DNA of 63,545 bases, counting the filler, from Octopus bimaculoides (lineage: Eukaryota): assembly GCF_001194135.2 (NCBI RefSeq). It is 6 parts of 6 records of this genome, joined end to end, with 100 filler letters (N's around TTAATTAATTAA, not from the genome) between each part and the next. Parts side by side here need not be neighbours in the genome. Positions count along the whole stretch, not along the records: positions 41,647 to 56,774 come from NC_068985.1; 5 more parts are not named here. One strand, 5' to 3'. The position numbers and the translations under genes were made by a program. Below are positions 43,591 to 56,774 of the stretch, piece after piece. Below the pieces are notes generated by a model that ran no database searches, was not told the DNA's origin, and saw only the letters and a program-made list of their open reading frames with translations. Each line of letters opens with the position of its first letter. Position 1 is the stretch's first letter.

Positions 43591-44450
43591 TCATGACCAC
43601 AGTTGAATCATTTAAAGAGATACAAGATAAATAATCTAAATAGATAAACATAATAATTTATATCCATAGACATATTAAATAACTCGATAGACGGAATTCT
43701 ACTTTACGCATCCCACATAACCCNNNNNNNNNNNNNNNNNNNNNNNNNNNNNNNNNNNNNNNNNNNNNNNNNNNNNNNNNNNNNNNNNNNNNNNNNNNNN
43801 NNNNNNNNNNNNNNNNNNNNNNNNNNNNNNNNNNNNNNNNNNNNNNNNNNNNNNNNNNNNNNNNNNNNNNNNNNNNNNNNNNNNNNNNNNNNNNNNNNNN
43901 NNNNNNNNNNNNNNNNNNNNNNNNNNNNNNNNNNNNNNNNNNNNNNNNNNNNNNNNNNNNNNNNNNNNNNNNNNNNNNNNNNNNNNNNNNNNNNNNNNNN
44001 NNNNNNNNNNNNNNNNNNNNNNNNNNNNNNNNNNNNNNNNNNNNNNNNNNNNNNNNNNNNNNNNNNNNNNNNNNNNNNNNNNNNNNNNNNNNNNNNNNNN
44101 NNNNNNNNNNNNNNNNNNNNNNNNNNNNNNNNNNNNNNNNNNNNNNNNNNNNNNNNNNNNNNNNNNNNNNNNNNNNNNNNNNNNNNNNNNNNNNNNNNNN
44201 NNNNNNNNNNNNNNNNNNNNNNNNNNNNNNNNNNNNNNNNNNNNNNNNNNNNNNNNNNNNNNNNNNNNNNNNNNNNNNNNNNNNNNNNNNNNTATAAATA
44301 TATAGATATATGCATATATCGTACATATATGGACATACGTACATCTATATATATATATATATATATATATACTTGTGTGTAGAATACAAATTCGTAAAAT
44401 GTTTTGAAAATTCTAAAAAATAAAGTTATAAAGGGTTATATGTCGATTAT

Positions 44451-44497
<47 letters not shown>

Positions 44498-44724
44498 CCA
44501 TGTTGGAGTTCTGTTTTCTTGGTTGCATCACCAAAGCTATATATGTATATATATAAACACGATATCTAGATAGAGAGAGAAAGCCGTAAAGGCTATAGCT
44601 TAGAAGAAAGACTACTAACAATTATTGCAGTAGTCAACTGAGAAGCTACACGACAGCTGATATAGTGTTCGGTAAATACATTCCGTGCAGTAAGAATAAA
44701 AGAATAAGAGTTTATAAGCGGTTA

Positions 44725-44795
44725 TGACGTGGAGGATGTGACCTCCGTTGGGTCATTGAAGCCGTGCCGGAAGTGCACAGTCCCCATCTCTTTCT
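44725..44795 (+). promoter_or_regulatory. Ribosomal-protein-type core promoter: CRE-like TGACGT (44725), ETS site CCGGAAGTG (44767-44775), TCT initiator (44787-44795)
   Basis: TCTTTCT at 44789-44795 matches the TCT consensus YC+1TYTYY; no TATA box seen. The combination is typical of metazoan RP genes. Confidence 0.7.
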
Positions 44796-44811
44796 CGTTT
44801 TTCAACCTGAG
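44788..44811 (+). other. UBA52: Probable non-coding exon 1 (5'TOP leader) of the UBL-eL40 gene
   Basis: Pyrimidine tract ctctttctcgtttttcaacctgag followed by a strong donor G|gtaagt at 44812. Joining to the acceptor at 48327 is inferred. Confidence 0.65.
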
Positions 44812-47234
44812 GTAAGTCACCATTTTATTTTACGTCGTGTATTTTTTGGACATTTATTCCTTATTTATGCGTCTTTAAACATTAAAATGTAATTTTATTT
44901 AACCATAACCTTTGCTAAATACCTCTTACCTGTTTATATTGTACATACATCAGTGTGTAAGTCTTTTTTTGTGTATAATTGTGTCGTTGTACTTTGCCGT
45001 GCTTCTACCACGTGTAGACTCTCAGTCTCTTAATATGTCGTTGAACCATTTTATTATTTGTAAAACTATTTAAAAATGCTAGCATTAATTGGTAGTAATC
45101 TTTTTACTAAGCTGCTGTCTTTTCCTCTCTATTCAGCTAGATAGATAGTGTGTTGTATTTATATACATGCATATACTAGTTTTTGTGATACGATCAGGAA
45201 AATAGAACTCTAATATGTATGTTCATATATATCATCTCTCTCTCATATATATATATATACATACACACGTATATATATATATATATATACATACACNNNN
45301 NNNNNNTATATATATATATATACATACACACGTATATATATATATATATATATATATACATACACACGTATATATATATATACACACACGTATATATACG
45401 CGCACACACATATTTATGATTATCGGCAGAAGTCCAAGAGTGACTCAAGGGCAGAGAATTTCGTGTATTGGTGCTTGTCGAGATATCTATTATGTATATG
45501 GATTTAAATTAAGCTTCAATTAATTTTGAAAATATTAGAGAATGTAGTAAGATAGACTTGTCATTATTTAAGCTGCTAATGGAGAGTAAATTGACGTATT
45601 GTGCTGTGTCGCTACAACTTAGATCTCTCCAAGATATGAAGTTTGTATTGCAGGAGCAAGGACTATTTTAGACGGTTTGGTATTAAAAATGTTAAATATG
45701 AATGTCATTTGTTGTTTGCAAAACTTATAGGGATATGTTAAACGTTTACAATAACGACCTGTGTTGAATACACCTTAAGTTCATATGTTCTGTTTATTCG
45801 GTACCGGATGGGTATTCTTTCGTGCTATTTCTAAGAATACCGTTTATTAGCCCTTTTATACTCCGTAAGAGCTCTGATCTCCGAACTCTGGGCGTGTACA
45901 TCCTTGGTGCTGAAATAATTTATTGATGATCGAAGGTATATTTGAATGGATAAAGAAATAAAATGCCAAGCCTTAATACTGTTTTAAACAATTGGATGTT
46001 GGTTGGTTATAAGTAACTTAGTCTGTAGGTCAAGGTCGTTTATAATTAGTATATATCGTTTTTCTCCTATATTACGTTTCCCATTTATATTCTATATAGG
46101 TGGTAGATGGGACGTGGATATTAAATTTTTTACTTTCGTAGTCATGTGCGCTAATTTAAGAGATAGCATATAGGAAGCCGGTGTCATTGATAACCATTTT
46201 CCTCGTACAAAAATGTCCGGACAGCTCGCAGAATAGGACAAAATGCTAAGCATTTTTGCTGATCAACTTTGCCTTTCTTGTGACATTTAACCGACTTTCC
46301 CCTTCCCCTGAAAAATTGCTGGCCTTGTGCACAATTCTATACAATGCAGTGATTTGTTTTTACTCTCTGCTATGAGTTGAAGAACAATTTACCATTTTTG
46401 TGTAAATCACGTGTCTGAAACAGCTAGATTCGTGGGGTAGGGATGTAATTTCGAATTTTTGTAGGTTTAAGGGGATAAGAAAATCTTTTACTATTATATA
46501 AGTGATGTGAAATATTTAGGGGTTCAAAGTCTAGTGAGAGATTGGATTCAACTTTCAAATGTTGCCAGAAAGGTGTTTTATTCTTGGATCAATTCAAACA
46601 ATTATACATTTGAACCTAGTTCTGTATATCATGCTAAAAGTAGATGTCAGGAATCCTATTCAATAAGTGTTGCATAAAATGTCAATCTTTTCTGGAATGA
46701 TGTTGAAACCCACAAAACATTACTGTTCCCATGCTTCAATAAATTGTAAAAATAATAATAAAGCAATATTTGGTACATAAAAAATTTAACATGAAATTTT
46801 GATGTTTTTAAATTAGTTGATTTAAAACAGGAATTTAGTATCATAGAATCTGGATCATCGCAGGCAGATTGGTGTCAACTGGGTTAACTTTACTCATGGA
46901 ATGTATTATTCTTGTAATGTATGTTGAAGTTAATGGTTATTCTAAGTAACTTTTCCCCATTGCAACATTTGAAATTTGCATTGATCAATTTTGTCCAGTG
47001 TATGTACTTTGAATGAGTTGAAATTTTGATTTAGTATGAAGTGTTGATAAACCTTTAATAGTGAAAAGGAATTAAAAATTAAGCTATGCTTACATAGCTT
47101 ATAATGCTAGAAAAGTTGAATTTCAACATAAGCTCTTTAAAAACAAGACTTTGTATTTTAGTATTTAAAGTATCATGTACACCAACACCAGCATTTCTTG
47201 TCACACTGAGCAAGGTTTCTCTTTGTCCAGTAGT

Positions 47235-47525: not shown

Positions 47526-48335
47526 TTTTCTGAGGTACATGTAGATAGATAGTAATTGTAGCTGTGAATCAAATTTAATTCTTAGAAGTTAGAAGGGGGG
47601 GGGGACATGTAAAAGGGTAGATCCACGGAGACATAAGATGAAGTGGTGAGAAAAGATCTGATGTTGGGCCTCACAGATGACATAAGGGACTGGTTTGCTG
47701 TGCTGGAGAAGACATACCAAGCTAAATAAAATCACGGCTGTCTATGCATACATCCCTTAGCTGAGAGATCTTTGTCTTGTGTCACGTTAAAGTATCAAGT
47801 ATGCTCTGTAAAGTGGTTGCCATTGGAAAGGGTCATGCAGCTGTAAAAACCATCCCAAAACATACAAATGGAACCCTGGCAACTCCCAAGCTGGTCAACT
47901 ATCAAATCATCCCATCCATCCCAGCATGGTGAGCAGACCTGAGGATGATGATGGTGGGAAGTAAACTAATTGAAAAGTAAAGCTGTGGCTCTTTCTATAG
48001 ATAGGGTCTGACATCTATAGCAAATTGCTCAGTAATGGGAATATATGTATTACATCTGAGATTAAAAATAGAGGTATTAATGCTTAGATGTAAGACTGCT
48101 GGGTAAGTCAGTGGAATATATAATCTGGATTCTCTAATACCTTATGGTGCTAAAAGTTTACAAAAATTCATTTTTCTTCAGATTTTGCTAACTTTGATAA
48201 TCTGGGTTTGGGAATTTGCGTTGCAGATTATGTATGGAGTGGGTCTTCATCACAGTTGATGTGGAGAAGTGTCTGTTTCACTGTATTATGCAGACATAGT
48301 GATAGTGTTGTTGGCTTCTCATTTCAGATACGAAA

Positions 48336-48438
48336 ATGCAACTCTTTGTATCGAATTTGGCCGGGAAGACCCTGGCCCTTGACATGCATTCATCCACCAC
48401 CACAATGGATGTGATGGATTCAATTACAGCCAGGGAAG
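48336..48438 (+). CDS. UBA52: UBL-eL40 coding exon 1 (aa 1-35)
   Basis: Acceptor tttcag|ATAC at 48327/48328, ATG at 48336, donor GAAG|gtaagt at 48438/48439. Confidence 0.95.
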
Positions 48439-51400
48439 GTAAGTATTTTATGCATTTCTCCTCCTCCTTCCATCAAACCTTTTCTGTTCTGGTTTTGATA
48501 GTAATTGAAGGAAATAAAAAGTAGTTATGTTATTGCTTCACGCATAAGAATGTGGTTATGTCGGATTGGCAGTTGTAGAGTGTGAAAGGGATAAATTGTG
48601 ATTAGTGTTAGCAAAATTTGGGTAATTACATGTAGAAACCATCTAGATGAAGAGGAAGGAATGGGTTGAGGGTGCTAACGTCTGGCATGGTAAAATCAGA
48701 ATTTTGTAAGGGAAACAGAAATAGAGTAGCTAAGCATAAGAAAACTACTACAGCAAATATGTATTAAATGTTTTTGGCTTGTGTATATTTATATAAAAAT
48801 TCACTTAATTTTCCATAAAAGCAGAGTTACAGCTATGACACAGTGTGCCTACATTTACTAGTCTGATAGAGTACATTCATGGAGAGTTTTGTCTCATGCT
48901 TTTGTAAAATCCTTTACATCTTAAACTAACCTAGTTTATTTTTCTCAGATGCTCATTATTTGAATTAACTCAAGTCCTTATAGTTGTATAAGTTCTGCTC
49001 TCAGCCATATTGCTATTATTTTGCCTTTATTTTGTAGGTTTATTGGTGATTTTCTGTTTCTTAAATATATAATATCTGTCCACTCTCACAATTTTAAATG
49101 TTACCCAATTTGTTAACATCCTTTGTATAGTTTGTGTTCTGGATTTCCCATTCATACTTCTACGAGCACAACCCAGCGTCTGCTGGTATATAAAAGTACT
49201 CGGCTGTAATGACTACAATACATATTTGCCATGCTCCAACTAGTACGTTTAATAACTTCATTTCTGATGGTTGTTTCGTAACCATATGGTTTTGGTTTCA
49301 GTCCCACTACACAGCACCTTAATTAATCTTTTTGTTGTCAACCTGCCTGAGAACGCATGTTTCAAAGAGCATTTCTACAGAAATGTGGTAGGGAAAGGGT
49401 GAAGTACTTCCTATAGTCCTGGGTCGGATCTGTTCAATTTGGCTCACAGATTTTTTAATTAATTCTTTTTAATACAGTTCTATTTAAGGGATAAGGAATT
49501 ATGTACATTATTTACATTTGACAGATATTTGCCATCTTGTTTGTTGCTGAGGTGTCTTGGGGAAATTTCGAACCTGGGTTCTCATTCCTATGGTATTTTT
49601 CAATGTTATTATTCAAGTCGCTGCCTGGAATTTAACTCGGAATCTTGGGGTTAGTAGCCTGCACTCTTAACCACTATGCCATATGCCCGAAGGCTGGAAG
49701 GTATATCAGCTGAAATGTTACCAAAATGAGGGCAAATATCTGTCAAATGTAAATAATGTAATTCTCACACAGAGCACGGTTTACTTAGAACATTTTTGAC
49801 AAAATTTGGTATTTTAGAAGTTATTTCGTGTAAAGTTGTTGTATTTGGGTAATTTCAGCCAATCAGTGATATGTATTCGGTTGAAGAAGGCTACTGCTGT
49901 TTGCGATAGTAATCGAAAAATAACAACTTCTGGGTCATCTCTTCTAAATGTCACCACTGTTCTATTCGTAAGGCATTTTGAAACTACATATACATGAACG
50001 GCAAAGAAGCTAGCTGGAGACTCATAGCTCTGTAAGTCTTTTAAACACTGGTGCACTTTATGTGCAAATATAACACTGATGTCAGGCAAACAATAAATAT
50101 ATGTAAATAATATTTCTTGCTTCTTGGTGTTGATTCTTCGATGTTTACTGGTTACTCTGACGCGAGAATCAAAAAAATAGGCAACACAAGCAGTAATGAT
50201 TAAAATAGAACAGTGGAGATGACCCGGAAGTTGTTCCTCTTCTGGTACTATCGCAAACAGCAGCAGCTTTCTTCAACCGAATACACATCGTTGATTGGTT
50301 GAAATTATCCAAATACGACAACATAAAATAACTTCTAAAATACCAAATTTTGTTCAAAATAAACTGTGTTCTGTGTGAGACATTCCACCAGTATACGAAG
50401 TTTCAAACTGTTAGTAAAAAGTAATTAACAAATCTGTGGGTTTATGTGGTAAATAGAAACTGTAAAGAAGCCCATTGTATTTATATTACATTGTGTTTCT
50501 GTCTCCTTGTCAAGCGGTCTTGTTTGCAATTTTGATTGGAAATTAGTGAGAGAAAAGGCATTTTTCTGTCTCAACAAATCCTGTCTGAACATTGATATAG
50601 TGACTGATATGGACAATGTAATCTTTAACTTGAAAAGTGCTTGCACCTCGTTAATTGATTTCCAGCATATCATAAGAACCACTCATCCTCTTGTGCTTAT
50701 GTTGGAGTATTGGTAGAGTCCTCTTCTTTTGCCAATTTGTTTCAAAGTTGACGTTGTCATGTCTGTGTTGGTTACATTGATAAGGGTGAATTTGAAACTT
50801 ATTCATGGATTTATGTATGCACGGATTTTTTTAAATATATTTTCTGTTCATAATTGAATCTTAGCTAAGTCATATACAATAAACAGGTTAATGTTTAAAT
50901 TTTTAATTATGCAAATTGTCTTTCAGGAATCCCCCAGAGCCTGCAACGACTTGTGTACTCGGGCAAACAGCTGGACGAAACTGCTAGGCTGAGTGAATAT
51001 GGTGTTGCTACAGGTAAGATCTTTGGCATTTGCATGTTCTTTAGCATTCAAAATGTTTTCGTGTCTTTTGGTGAAAAGTTGTTAGCATAACATTTTTACA
51101 CTGTCTCAGACAGTTGTGTTGTTTTCTTTGCAATGATGTTCCAGGTTTGATCCCACTGCACAGTTCTTTGAATGAGTGGGTGATAGTATGGATCTCTGTT
51201 CATATTCACTTGCGAATCAAATTGATACATTAACAGAATGAAATAAGATTGATTGCTGTCCTGTGACTTTTATACAATATTAGTAATGTAAGCTTTATCT
51301 TGACATACGAAATTACAAACCTGGACTTATTTTTCTGTTGCAAAGCTAGGTGATTTATTCAGTGTCCACTTTTCCCCATTCTAGAATAGTTCATCCATTT

Positions 51401-54222
51401 GTTCCCCTCTTGGGAGTCATCCAGATTTTACCTCTGGTGAGACATTTGTACATGAAATATTTTATGTTTGGTTGTTAGATATTACTTAATTTGTTTCCGA
51501 CTAGGTTACCATCATCAAAGAAACTTACAGATTTTATTGCTTTTGAAAAAAATGGTCAGAAAAGAGTTGTACTATGATATATAGGTTTTATATTAGGGTT
51601 AATGTTCATTAATATGGAATTTGGAATCTTTATAGGTGGCAACAATTTAAAACTATTGTCATTTGTATTAACATGTGACATTTCGGGCAAGTGTTTTCTT
51701 CTGTAGCAAGCCTACAGTTGGATGATGGCTTGTAATAGGAGTTGATTGATGGAAACTACTAGGCTGCATGTCATGTACATATTTATTGTCTGTGTCTAAG
51801 CAAGATATTGAAACTCTCCAGAAAAAGAAATGGTTGATACTGCAGTTTTGACATGTGCAGGCAAGTTGAATGGAAAATAGCCATCAAAACAATTGACAAT
51901 TCATGACAGCGAAGTCATCCAGCTGTTGAAAAGAGTCTTCTATAACCTTTGCCACCATGGAAAACCAAATGACAGAATTGTTAGGGCATTAGGTGTAAGA
52001 GTGATATTTGATCTGGCTGAGATCATCTGAGCTTTTCATCTTTCCATGATTGATAACTTAGAGCACCAGTCAGCACCTGGGTTTCTCTAATTTCTCAACC
52101 TAACCCTAACCCTTCCATACTAGCATGGGTTGGACGATTTGACTGAGGATTGGCGAACCAGATGGCTACACCAGGCTCCAATCTGATTTGCTAGAGTTTC
52201 TACAGCTGGACGCCCTTCCTAATGCCAACCACTCCGAGAGTGTAGTATGTGCTTCCATGTGCCACCTGCACAGAAACCAGTCCAGCGGCACTGGCATCGA
52301 TCTTCCTAGAATGTTTCTCACGTGCTACCGGCACCTATTACATATTTGCTGTAAGAATGTTTATACTTTGCTTGTGAATTATTTCTGAATTAATATTTAT
52401 TTATTCATTGTTGTGTTGCAGGAAGTACTCTCCATTTGCTACTCCGCCTTCCTGGTGGTATCATTGAACCCAGTTTACGTATGCTTGCTTCAAAATACAA
52501 CTGTGAGAAGATGATCTGCCGAAAGTAAGTACAACCTGTTACTGTTTGTTTTTAGATTGGAATTAATTACTGTATTTGCCAGCATATAGGCTGTGCTTTT
52601 GTATTTTTACATGTATAAAAAAAAAATTGCCCTGCATTTAATGTAACTATAAGTAGAGTATTAAAAAGAAGCCAAAATATCCATCTGCTAGCACTAACTT
52701 ACCAATAATTGCTTATGGCATGTTGGCAGTTATATGGAGAGATCATATCTCGTACCTCCTTACCTGGTATACATAATCCACACTTGATATGTTGTACATT
52801 ATTTAGCCCTTTAGCATTTATAGAACATTATATGGTACTTTCTAAAAGGCTGGTTCTGACTGTAAAACAGGCAGAATATTTCAGCCACATGGTCAGTTTA
52901 GATGCTAAAGGATTAATGAGTGCTACCATTAACTTTTTAGCATTTAAATCGTCTATATCCATCCCAAATATTCTGTCTGTTTTGTATTCAAAATGTCATT
53001 CGAAGAATAAACTAGCACTTCAAGATCTTGTAGCTATGATTAATTCAGAATAATGTGAATCAATAACATTACATTTGAAGGTACTCATGAATGCTAAAGA
53101 GTTAAATGGTTTTTGATAATGTAAATGAAATTCTAGAATGATGAGAAGAATGTAATTTTCATCAGTTTCTCAGCTATTTGTAATGCATTAATGACAAAGT
53201 AGTATGGTACACCTCCCTGATGACCTATTGTGGTAACATGAAACATCATAGCCACTATGTATGTTTTACGTACTGTATAACAATTCTCTTGATCAAAGTA
53301 GAAATAATTATGCAGTTGATCTGATGCAGAGAATTGAAATACAGTACTCATGTAATGTAGTTTATGTGATAAATTTACGGTTTCATACTTTGTTCAAATA
53401 TACTGTCACAGCATTGTATTTACATGCACAGAATTACTTTTCCTCGACAAATGTCTTATATGCTAGTATGTTGTCATCATCATTTAAACGTCCGTTGTCC
53501 ATGCTGGCATGGGTTGGATGCTTTGTCTCGGGCTGGAAGGCTGCACCAGACTCCAGTCTGATTGGACATGGTTTCTGTGGCTGGATGCCCTTCTTGATGC
53601 CAACCACTCTGATAGTGTAATGGTTGTTCTTCTCAAGCACAACAATGCCAAAGGTCTTAGTCCTTCGTCATTGCCTCTGTGAGGCCCAATGCTCAAAAGG
53701 GTGCTCTCTACTTGCCATTGGCATGAGTGCCAGTTTACATGGCACCAGCATCAGCTGCGACTATGATTTCACTTGGCTTGATGGGTCCTCTTAATTAGCG
53801 AAAAATGTATTTGTGGTTAGATTCTGAATGACTGACTAAATCCCTGAGCCGGGTTTAATTTTTATCGAGATCCCTGTTTTTCACTTCTATATAAAGATTC
53901 AACTCTAGTAATACTCTTTGTATTACAGTTAAGGAAAATTAATCAAAGATATTGCAGTCTTGATCACTACTGATTGTTTGGACTGCAAAATATATTGTTT
54001 ATTAGAGGGTATGATTTAAGAGATTTGCTTGTTACTTTTAATAATCTGTTACAACAATGTAATACTATTGACTCTTTCTTTCTCACTATGTTCCAGTAAA
54101 TTAATATCTTCTTTTACTGTTCTTTCAGGTGCTATGCTCGCCTTCACCCACGTGCTACCAACTGCCGTAAAAGGAAATGTGGCCATAGTAATAATCTGCG
54201 GCCCAAGAAGAAGCTAAAGTAA
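48336..54222 (+). CDS. UBA52: Ubiquitin-like domain-ribosomal protein eL40 fusion (UBA52/RPL40-like), 128 aa, join(48336-48438,50927-51013,52422-52524,54129-54222)
   Basis: Spliced translation [128 protein letters not shown]. 387 nt, all introns GT-AG, compatible phases 1/1/2. The symbol is assigned from eL40 and gene layout; the N-terminal domain is not canonical ubiquitin. Confidence 0.96.
49505..49759. mobile_element. Intronic element with 29-bp perfect inverted ends, an antisense tRNA-like head and a truncated hammerhead remnant
   Basis: 49505-49533 is the exact reverse complement of 49731-49759. Minus-strand TGGCATAGTGG..GAGTTAAATTCC at about 49615-49687; GA-A-GGCTG..CAGCT-GAAA at 49689-49715. 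Confidence 0.7.
49763..50380. mobile_element. Fold-back/MITE element with ~165-180-bp inverted arms in intron 2
   Basis: 49763-49941 and 50216-50380 are reverse complements at roughly 80-85% identity by eye. No clear TSD. Confidence 0.85.
50927..51013 (+). CDS. UBA52: UBL-eL40 coding exon 2 (aa 35-64)
   Basis: tttcag|GAATCCCC..GCTACAG|gtaag; 87 nt. Confidence 0.95.
52105..52330 (-). mobile_element. R1 LINE tail in intron 3
   Basis: Matches 22346-22533. Confidence 0.75.
52422..52524 (+). CDS. UBA52: UBL-eL40 coding exon 3 (aa 64-98, spans the PGG|IIEP junction)
   Basis: ttgcag|GAAGTACT..CGAAA|gtaagt; 103 nt. Confidence 0.96.
52807..53101. mobile_element. Two M1 piggyBac-type MITEs in opposite orientation (52807-52912 and 52933-53101) in intron 4
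   Basis: Both have CCTTTAGCAT-type TIRs with TTAA-like flanks, and their adjacent ends are mutually complementary. Confidence 0.7.
53470..53790 (-). mobile_element. R1 LINE tail in intron 4
   Basis: catcatcatttaaacgtccgttgtccatgctggcatgggttgg..ctggatgcccttc. Confidence 0.75.
54129..54222 (+). CDS. UBA52: UBL-eL40 coding exon 4 (eL40 C-terminus, stop TAA 54220-54222)
   Basis: tttcag|GTGCTATGCTCGC encodes [30 protein letters not shown]. Confidence 0.97.
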
Positions 54223-54253: not shown

Positions 54254-54259
54254 AATAAA
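54254..54259 (+). terminator. Polyadenylation signal AATAAA
   Basis: Lies 31 nt after the stop and is followed by T/GT-rich sequence, giving the short 3' UTR typical of RP mRNAs. Confidence 0.8.
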
Positions 54260-56425: not shown

Positions 56426-56774
56426 GGCTTTCGTTGACATGGAGAAAGCCTTTGACAGGGTCCCCCGATCCCTTATCTGGTGGTCAATGAGGAAACTTGG
56501 GATAGAAGAATGGTTAGTGAGAGCTGTGCGAGCCATGTACAGAGATGCTGCCAGTAAGGTGAGGGTTGGAAATGAGTACAGCAATGAATTCTGGGTAGAA
56601 GTAGGGGTCCACCAAGGTTCCGTCCTCAGCCCCCTCTTATTTATCATAGTCCTCCAGGCAATCACAGAGGAGTTCAAGACAGGTTGCCCCTGGGAGCTCC
56701 TCTATGCTGATGACCTTGCCCTAATTGCGGAGTCACTCAGAACTAGAGGAGAAGTTTCAGGTGTGGAAGCAAGG
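56426..56774 (+). mobile_element. RTE LINE reverse-transcriptase fragment (little decayed, cut by gap)
   Basis: AFVDMEKAFDRVPR..GVHQGSVLSPLLF..LLYADDLALIA. Confidence 0.92.

Follow-up and report, generated by a model that had tools for sequence, protein, structure and literature searches.

Among proteins that hardly ever change, ubiquitin is the stock example. What, then, is the N-terminal half of an octopus gene that is annotated as ubiquitin-60S ribosomal protein L40 and whose ubiquitin-like portion ends in LRLPGG rather than LRLRGG? The gene lies in a stretch of 63,545 nucleotides (nt) of Octopus bimaculoides DNA (assembly GCF_001194135.2), called the window below, in which six parts of the genome are joined end to end with filler letters. 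It is carried on the plus strand of the part taken from NC_068985.1 (41,647 to 56,774), and all coordinates are whole-window positions. We obtained the gene model by tblastn with canonical ubiquitin-eL40 (Ub-eL40) as the query and then inspected the splice junctions. The result was a four-exon GT-AG gene with an uninterrupted spliced coding sequence of 387 nt, encoding a protein of 128 amino acids that is 100% identical to XP_014769892.1, the annotated ubiquitin-60S ribosomal protein L40 of O. bimaculoides. Our reading, which we hold at a probability of about 0.6, is that this is the coleoid descendant of the ancestral Ub-eL40 gene (UBA52/RPL40), and that its ubiquitin-like domain (UBL) is a cleavable cis-chaperone tag freed from the role of ubiquitin.

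The two halves of the protein

The C-terminal half is eL40 throughout. It is identical to human eL40 at 45 of 52 residues, the PF01020 profile scored 108.1 bits (cut-off 23; canonical protein 112) and was covered from position 1 to 50 of 50, and the zinc-ribbon cysteines are all present, C96 being encoded by exon 3 and C99, C110 and C115 by exon 4. The N-terminal half is a 76-residue domain that ends in diglycine and directly abuts eL40 at a GG/IIEP junction. It matched PF00240 over positions 1-71 of 72 with 64.5 bits (cut-off 25.4), compared with 114 bits for ubiquitin itself, and was identical to ubiquitin at 37 of 76 residues (49%). Ubiquitin proper has a near-invariant sequence (96% identity between yeast and human), seven lysines and an LRLRGG tail, and the octopus domain falls outside that description: 39 of its 76 positions differ, the changes include K6S, K27M, K29S, K33R, K63T and R74P, and it lacks five of those seven lysines.

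Among the coleoid UBLs, the core, L8, I36, R42, G47-K48-Q49-L50, H68, L71-R72-L73 and G75-G76 are invariant. The patches L8/V44/H68/L70 and I36/L71/L73 are kept, the replacements of I44 by V and of V70 by L being conservative, and the codon table of the spliced gene bears out the statement in the first-pass annotation of this DNA that R42 and R72 are retained. The helix at residues 23-34 has had its face replaced, with 3 of 12 residues identical to ubiquitin. Of the lysines, K48 alone occurs in all coleoid UBLs, K11 being confined to octopods and K6 to the cuttlefish sequences.

In the yeast fitness landscape of ubiquitin, R42, I44, K48 and G75-G76 are sensitive to mutation, and L8, I36, V70, L71 and L73 are sensitive under stress (PMC4862753). 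At these positions the octopus UBL is identical to ubiquitin in 8 of 10 cases and conservatively changed in the other 2, compared with 29 identities at the 66 positions elsewhere (p=0.035). An AlphaFold model built with an alignment gave the UBL a predicted local distance difference test score (pLDDT) of 79-87 and the order of secondary-structure elements seen in ubiquitin, while the single-sequence version was unusable at pLDDT 39. The UBL model superposed on 1UBQ with a template-modelling (TM) score of 0.95 and a root-mean-square deviation (RMSD) of 1.1 Å, and the junction residues 77-79 had pLDDT values below 50. As modelled, the UBL keeps the beta-grasp fold.

Ancestry and selection in cephalopods

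Orthologues with the LRLPGG tail were found in O. vulgaris, O. sinensis, Argonauta hians and the cuttlefish Acanthosepion pharaonis, and in a Logan transcript (run SRR29271476). The eL40 half is identical at 52 of 52 residues in every coleoid sampled, and the UBLs of octopus and cuttlefish are identical at 55 of 76. In the Logan contig all three coding introns have been removed relative to the cuttlefish genome, which indicates that the cuttlefish orthologue is transcribed and spliced. Two of the orthologous protein records have peculiarities of their own. The A. pharaonis annotation (P0123) carries a 59-residue N-terminal extension that is unique among the species and is probably a mis-called upstream exon, and the Logan protein (P0124) diverges from eL40 shortly ahead of the exon 3 boundary (MICPK... 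in place of MICRK...) and resembles a product that was left unspliced or assembled wrongly.

Intron positions and phases were identical in the five cephalopod genomes, that is, octopus and four others, and in the bivalve Mactra antiquata, whose Ub-eL40 gene is canonical, the exons match at 103, 87, 103 and 94 nt in the same phases. Because this exon structure is held in common with a canonical gene, the cephalopod gene is either the ancestral locus itself or a copy made from it at the DNA level, not a retrocopy. A processed pseudogene was likewise rejected, given introns at ancestral positions and an intact open reading frame (ORF) under selection.

Between Octopus and Argonauta, the UBL showed proportions of synonymous and nonsynonymous differences (pS and pN) of 0.48 and 0.07, with a ratio, omega, of 0.094 (Fisher 5e-11), and the eL40 half had zero nonsynonymous changes (omega ~0). 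The nonsynonymous load of the two halves differed significantly in this pair (p=0.0017). The UBL is under purifying selection and functional, yet it is far less constrained than eL40 or true ubiquitin. We counted 21 substitutions relative to ubiquitin, R74P among them, that are common to octopods and cuttlefish, and 24 further positions that vary within cephalopods; on parsimony, the shared 21 were fixed before the octopod-cuttlefish split. Within codons 70-79, synonymous differences among cephalopods occurred at L71, R72, L73, P74 and G76 (GGT to GGC in Argonauta). At codon 74, Octopus and cuttlefish have CCT, Argonauta has CCC and the canonical bivalve gene has CGT. The synonymous differences at P74 and G76 indicate that the proline and the diglycine have been held by selection.

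When set beside canonical Ub-eL40 (human UBA52, yeast UBI1/UBI2, Mactra and Crassostrea), the cephalopod protein has the same 76 + 52 residues, the same GG/I(I/V)EP junction and an almost unchanged eL40 zinc ribbon, and its gene shares three intron positions with the bivalve gene. Presumably it also follows the same logic, with an N-terminal tag removed before eL40 works in the 60S subunit. The tag itself is what differs. Canonical tags are 96-100% identical to ubiquitin, whereas the cephalopod tag stands at 49%, lacks K6 (in octopods), K27, K29, K33 and K63, and ends in LRLPGG instead of LRLRGG; and where ubiquitin is essentially frozen, the cephalopod UBL evolves, with an omega of ~0.09.

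These data also bear on whether the gene could be a redundant, relaxed or tissue-restricted paralogue that stands beside a canonical Ub-eL40, in which case its divergence would be of little consequence. Such a paralogue would fit the small number of transcript contigs with this protein in the collection, and the searches for a canonical copy were weakly negative at best. We nevertheless consider a dispensable paralogue improbable, since neither half evolves in a relaxed manner within coleoids, the exons are laid out as in the ancestral locus, and NCBI gives the name L40 to this very protein in three octopus species. Moreover, the exact sequence of canonical ubiquitin joined to the cephalopod eL40 tail was absent from a collection of 15 billion proteins. 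Three of ten guessed combinations of canonical ubiquitin with a mollusc tail do exist there (in oyster, in insects/amphioxus and in others), with no cephalopod name among 40 members per cluster. These exact look-ups speak weakly against a canonical cephalopod copy. The similarity searches were less informative still. A chimera of canonical ubiquitin and the cephalopod eL40 tail returned polyubiquitins or 2xUb-eL40 proteins, whose domain scores are summed, for all of its best 120 matches. The eL40 tail as the only query returned nothing but proteins of up to 91 amino acids, the window's own protein not being among them.

Three other systems in which a UBL precedes a ribosomal protein offer comparisons. 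FUBI-eS30 (FAU) had been proposed as an analogue in the first-pass annotation, and the analogy is apt. FUBI is likewise a diverged, diglycine-ended UBL in front of a small ribosomal protein, and both domains begin with MQLFV, are lysine-poor and have no Arg at the position equivalent to 74. FUBI must be cleaved for maturation of the subunit, and processing of FUBI-eS30 requires USP36 (PMC8354635). FUBI differs in that its partner is eS30, of the 40S subunit, in being 36% identical to ubiquitin, and in being holozoan-wide (PMC8354635), thus much older than the cephalopod UBL. The octopus UBL shares 22 identities with FUBI versus 37 with ubiquitin, which makes the cephalopod UBL an independent derivative of ubiquitin. 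We therefore rejected a FUBI relative, as the UBL is closer to ubiquitin and is fused to eL40.

The second system, nematode UBL-1-eS31, was compared by name only. It too is a lineage-specific divergence within one of the two classical fusions of ubiquitin to a ribosomal protein (Ub-RP), although the fusion partner is eS31 and the phylum a different one. In the nematode lineage that has it, the other ubiquitin genes stay canonical. The third surfaced in the tail-only query above and is a 629-nt environmental contig (L007; European Nucleotide Archive ERZ27237291). Positions 106-487 of this contig encode MQLFVRSIDGQ...ARLAGG/VIEPSLR..., in which eL40 follows a non-ubiquitin MQLFV... domain with the tail ARLAGG. 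The domain is shorter and far more diverged than that of octopus, with 26 identities to ubiquitin and 22 to its octopus counterpart, and the contig reads through in frame only once a 22-nt GT..AG segment (L007:244-265) is taken out. Its existence suggests that eL40 preceded by a diverged UBL probably occurs in other lineages too. For gauging how common such fusions are, a HMMER search with the octopus protein against a library of 1.84 billion representatives was of no help, since its best 150 matches were multi-domain polyubiquitin-like proteins.

The LRLPGG tail and the fate of the domain

The tail occupies 52442..52459 on the plus strand. Its codons are L71 CTC (52442-52444), R72 CGC, L73 CTT, P74 CCT (52451-52453), G75 GGT and G76 GGT (52457-52459), followed by I77 ATC (52460-52462), I78 ATT and E79 GAA, such that the predicted scissile bond is G76/I77 and cleavage is predicted to fall between 52459 and 52460. 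The nine-codon reading of the first-pass annotation, which encodes LRLPGG/IIE, is present as described but spans 52442-52468; the interval originally assigned to it, 52443-52472, starts one base late and translates in the wrong frame. That annotation had also allowed that P74 might be a base-call error or lack conservation in orthologues. Neither is the case, as LRLPGG recurs in one transcript and in the assemblies of four further genomes and P74 is conserved in all coleoid orthologues found. With five genomes in agreement, we rejected sequencing error as its source.

The same annotation presented R74P as the decisive defect of a tail otherwise like that of ubiquitin, a framing that the data do not support. 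R74P is 1 of 21 shared substitutions in a domain that is 49% identical to ubiquitin. The 39 differences in 76 positions make it part of a general divergence, not a lone lesion, and with 21 substitutions shared, altered use by proteases or by the ubiquitin-activating enzyme (E1) is not attributable to residue 74 alone. The accompanying claim that R74 is read by deubiquitinases (DUBs) and by E1 holds for the first of these in part. In peptide libraries, UCH-L3 has a narrow preference for Arg at P3, with hydrophobic residues below ~30%, while other LXGG-cleaving enzymes accept a non-basic P3 (PMC7477763). For E1, the primary determinant is described as R72, not R74, and FAT10, whose tail is CYCIGG, is activated with Ile at the 74-equivalent position (PMC9378703); R74 is also absent among the positions named as sensitive in the yeast fitness landscape (PMC4862753). 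Plausibly, although this is speculative, P74 shifts which enzymes handle the tail. With proline there, Arg-preferring hydrolases, and perhaps the conjugation machinery, would be expected to use the tail less, though it would still be cut.

How might such a tag work? The ubiquitin moiety of Ub-eL40 acts as a cis-chaperone and is quickly removed (PMC8122580). We infer that in coleoids the N-terminal moiety ceased to be ubiquitin and became a lineage-specific ubiquitin-like domain, which would help eL40 in cis, as a cleavable tag for its folding and expression. As in Ub-eL40 and FUBI-eS30, the tag would be cut off behind G76 by a protease of the deubiquitinase type, either ahead of 60S assembly or in its course. 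The retained docking patches and tail would keep the UBL cuttable, these being the surfaces that a protease needs to dock and cut. The cell's ubiquitin would presumably be supplied by other ubiquitin genes, namely polyubiquitin and Ub-eS31.

A stronger role for the proline, put forward in the first-pass annotation, is that P74 slows cleavage or demands a dedicated protease and thereby creates a regulated step in 60S maturation. Judged from the sequence, this is a tentative possibility. The poor acceptance of hydrophobic residues by UCH-L3 (PMC7477763) would be in keeping with it, as would the dependence of FUBI-eS30 on USP36 (PMC8354635) and the maintenance of P74 since before the octopod-cuttlefish split despite synonymous codon change. 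On the other hand, non-basic residues at P3 are tolerated by other LXGG-cleaving enzymes, several DUBs are redundant on Ub-RP fusions (PMC8354635), R74 is not among the sensitive yeast positions that were named (PMC4862753), and the 20 other shared substitutions could equally alter the choice of protease.

At the extreme, P74 could block cleavage altogether and leave the UBL on eL40 in the mature ribosome. There is a precedent in Giardia, where a naturally uncleaved Ubi3, the precursor of eS31 with its ubiquitin-like domain, is reported in all ribosomes (PMC8122580). We give this very little credence for the octopus protein. G75 and G76 are invariant even though Argonauta has GGC for GGT, a pattern that selection for cleavage or activation would produce, and the junction at residues 77-79 is predicted by the model to be flexible and accessible. 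In yeast, moreover, Ub-eL40 that stays uncleaved disturbs both the biogenesis of the 60S subunit and its function: by interfering at the GTPase-associated centre it hampers elongation and the recycling of Tif6 (PMC8122580).

If the UBL is released, it might still be conjugated through G76, using R42, R72 and the hydrophobic patch, and perhaps be extended or ubiquitinated at K48, as either a reduced ubiquitin or a new LPGG modifier. The diglycine, R42, R72, L8/V44/H68/L70 and K48 are invariant across coleoids, R72 is described as the primary determinant for E1, and FAT10 is activated although it lacks Arg at the 74-equivalent position (PMC9378703), and interaction with E1 is said to enforce many of the constraints on ubiquitin (PMC4862753). 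A 51% change in sequence and the loss of K6, K27, K29, K33 and K63 argue instead for an exit from the ubiquitin network, which keeps genuine ubiquitin nearly unchanged; the retained residues are also protease contacts, and FUBI keeps its diglycine although conjugation has not been firmly shown for it (PMC8354635). On balance, we regard continued conjugation as rather unlikely. Bolder still, and by the sequence quite improbable, is the proposal that every coleoid eL40 precursor releases a new E1-charged modifier, attached through LPGG and extended at K48 only, which would amount to a parallel tagging system tied to ribosome production. The mass given for the LPGG remnant in the first-pass annotation proved correct on recomputation (324.180 Da), and such a system, if it existed, would leave +324.180 Da on lysine and be invisible to standard K-GG proteomics.

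Several points weigh against the reading of the UBL as a cleavable tag freed from ubiquitin's role. Cleavage, the mature N-terminus of eL40 and the fate of the free UBL are predictions here. The retained R42, I44-type patch, R72, diglycine and K48 would serve E1 activation and K48 chains equally well, which means that residues kept for the protease and residues kept for conjugation are not separable. The enrichment of identities at yeast-sensitive positions is modest, with p=0.035 in octopus and 0.06 in cuttlefish. The alignment used for AlphaFold was dominated by true ubiquitin, which makes the model supportive but not independent. Synonymous divergence between octopus and cuttlefish is saturated, and for this reason only the Octopus-Argonauta omega is reliable. 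Finally, the searches bearing on whether this might be the sole eL40 gene were swamped, restricted in length or weakly negative.

The LRLPGG tail appeared in no paper in a literature search, and queries for cephalopod ubiquitin-L40 and octopus UBA52 gave nothing relevant by title or abstract. The gene is already annotated, and the divergence of its ubiquitin half seems to be undescribed. eL40 and eS31 are said to be "practically invariably" fused to ubiquitin itself, and a 2021 survey of ubiquitin fusions dropped domains less than 80% identical to yeast ubiquitin (PMC8122580), a cut-off that left it unable to see the cephalopod case. In both major coleoid lineages the ubiquitin half has drifted, to 49% identity, next to an eL40 half that stayed frozen. 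The gene can be read as a natural experiment that asks which residues ubiquitin must keep if its only tasks are to chaperone eL40 and to be cleaved off, and the answer (hydrophobic patches, R42, R72, K48 and the diglycine) overlaps the set of mutation-sensitive positions in yeast. With it, a second FUBI-like system of independent origin would be available for asking why cleavable UBLs sit on ribosomal proteins, which proteases remove them and whether the released UBL has a role of its own. For proteomics and annotation in octopus and cuttlefish, the product of the UBL should not be counted as ubiquitin.

Exons and flanking sequence

All four coding exons are on the plus strand. Exon 1 (48336..48438) encodes M1-E34 and the first base of G35, thus the beta1-beta2 hairpin and the helix of the UBL, and it is 103 nt long in the four other cephalopod genomes and canonical Mactra as well. 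Exon 2 (50927..51013) encodes G35-T63 and the first base of G64, contains R42, V44 and K48, and measures 87 nt in all species compared. Exon 3 (52422..52524), which runs from G64 to R97 plus two bases of K98 and so crosses from the UBL into eL40, measures 103 nt in all species compared. Exons 2 and 3 are each flanked by an AG acceptor and a GT donor. Exon 4 (54129..54222) extends from the last base of K98 to K128 and a TAA stop codon and carries C99, C110 and C115. An AATAAA polyadenylation signal, read directly from the sequence, lies ~30 nt 3' of the stop codon (54254..54259, plus strand).

An acceptor-like sequence, ...tcatttcag, occurs 8 nt 5' of the ATG (48320-48335), and the cuttlefish transcript has the same arrangement of an acceptor before the ATG. 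Together these make an intron in the 5' untranslated region and an upstream non-coding exon likely. A comparison of the regions upstream of the gene in octopus and Argonauta gave repeat-like matches only and located neither a non-coding first exon nor a conserved promoter.

An Rfam scan for intronic small nucleolar RNAs gave no match at the gathering score. Sub-threshold matches to mir-297, mir-466 and mir-3149 (best 51 bits, gathering score 90) fell on TA/CA repeats and are almost certainly low-complexity artefacts. Simple repeats of the TA/CA type extend over ~44300-45520, after a run of N at ~43700-44300 (589 N in the piece in total). A short telomere-like motif, ctaaccctaaccctt, is located in intron 2 at 52100-52114, shortly upstream of exon 3. 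Downstream of the eL40 gene, an ORF on the plus strand at 56439-56774, cut by the edge of the piece, matched RVT_1 (PF00078, 46.6 bits) and has a YADD motif; it is a retroelement fragment.

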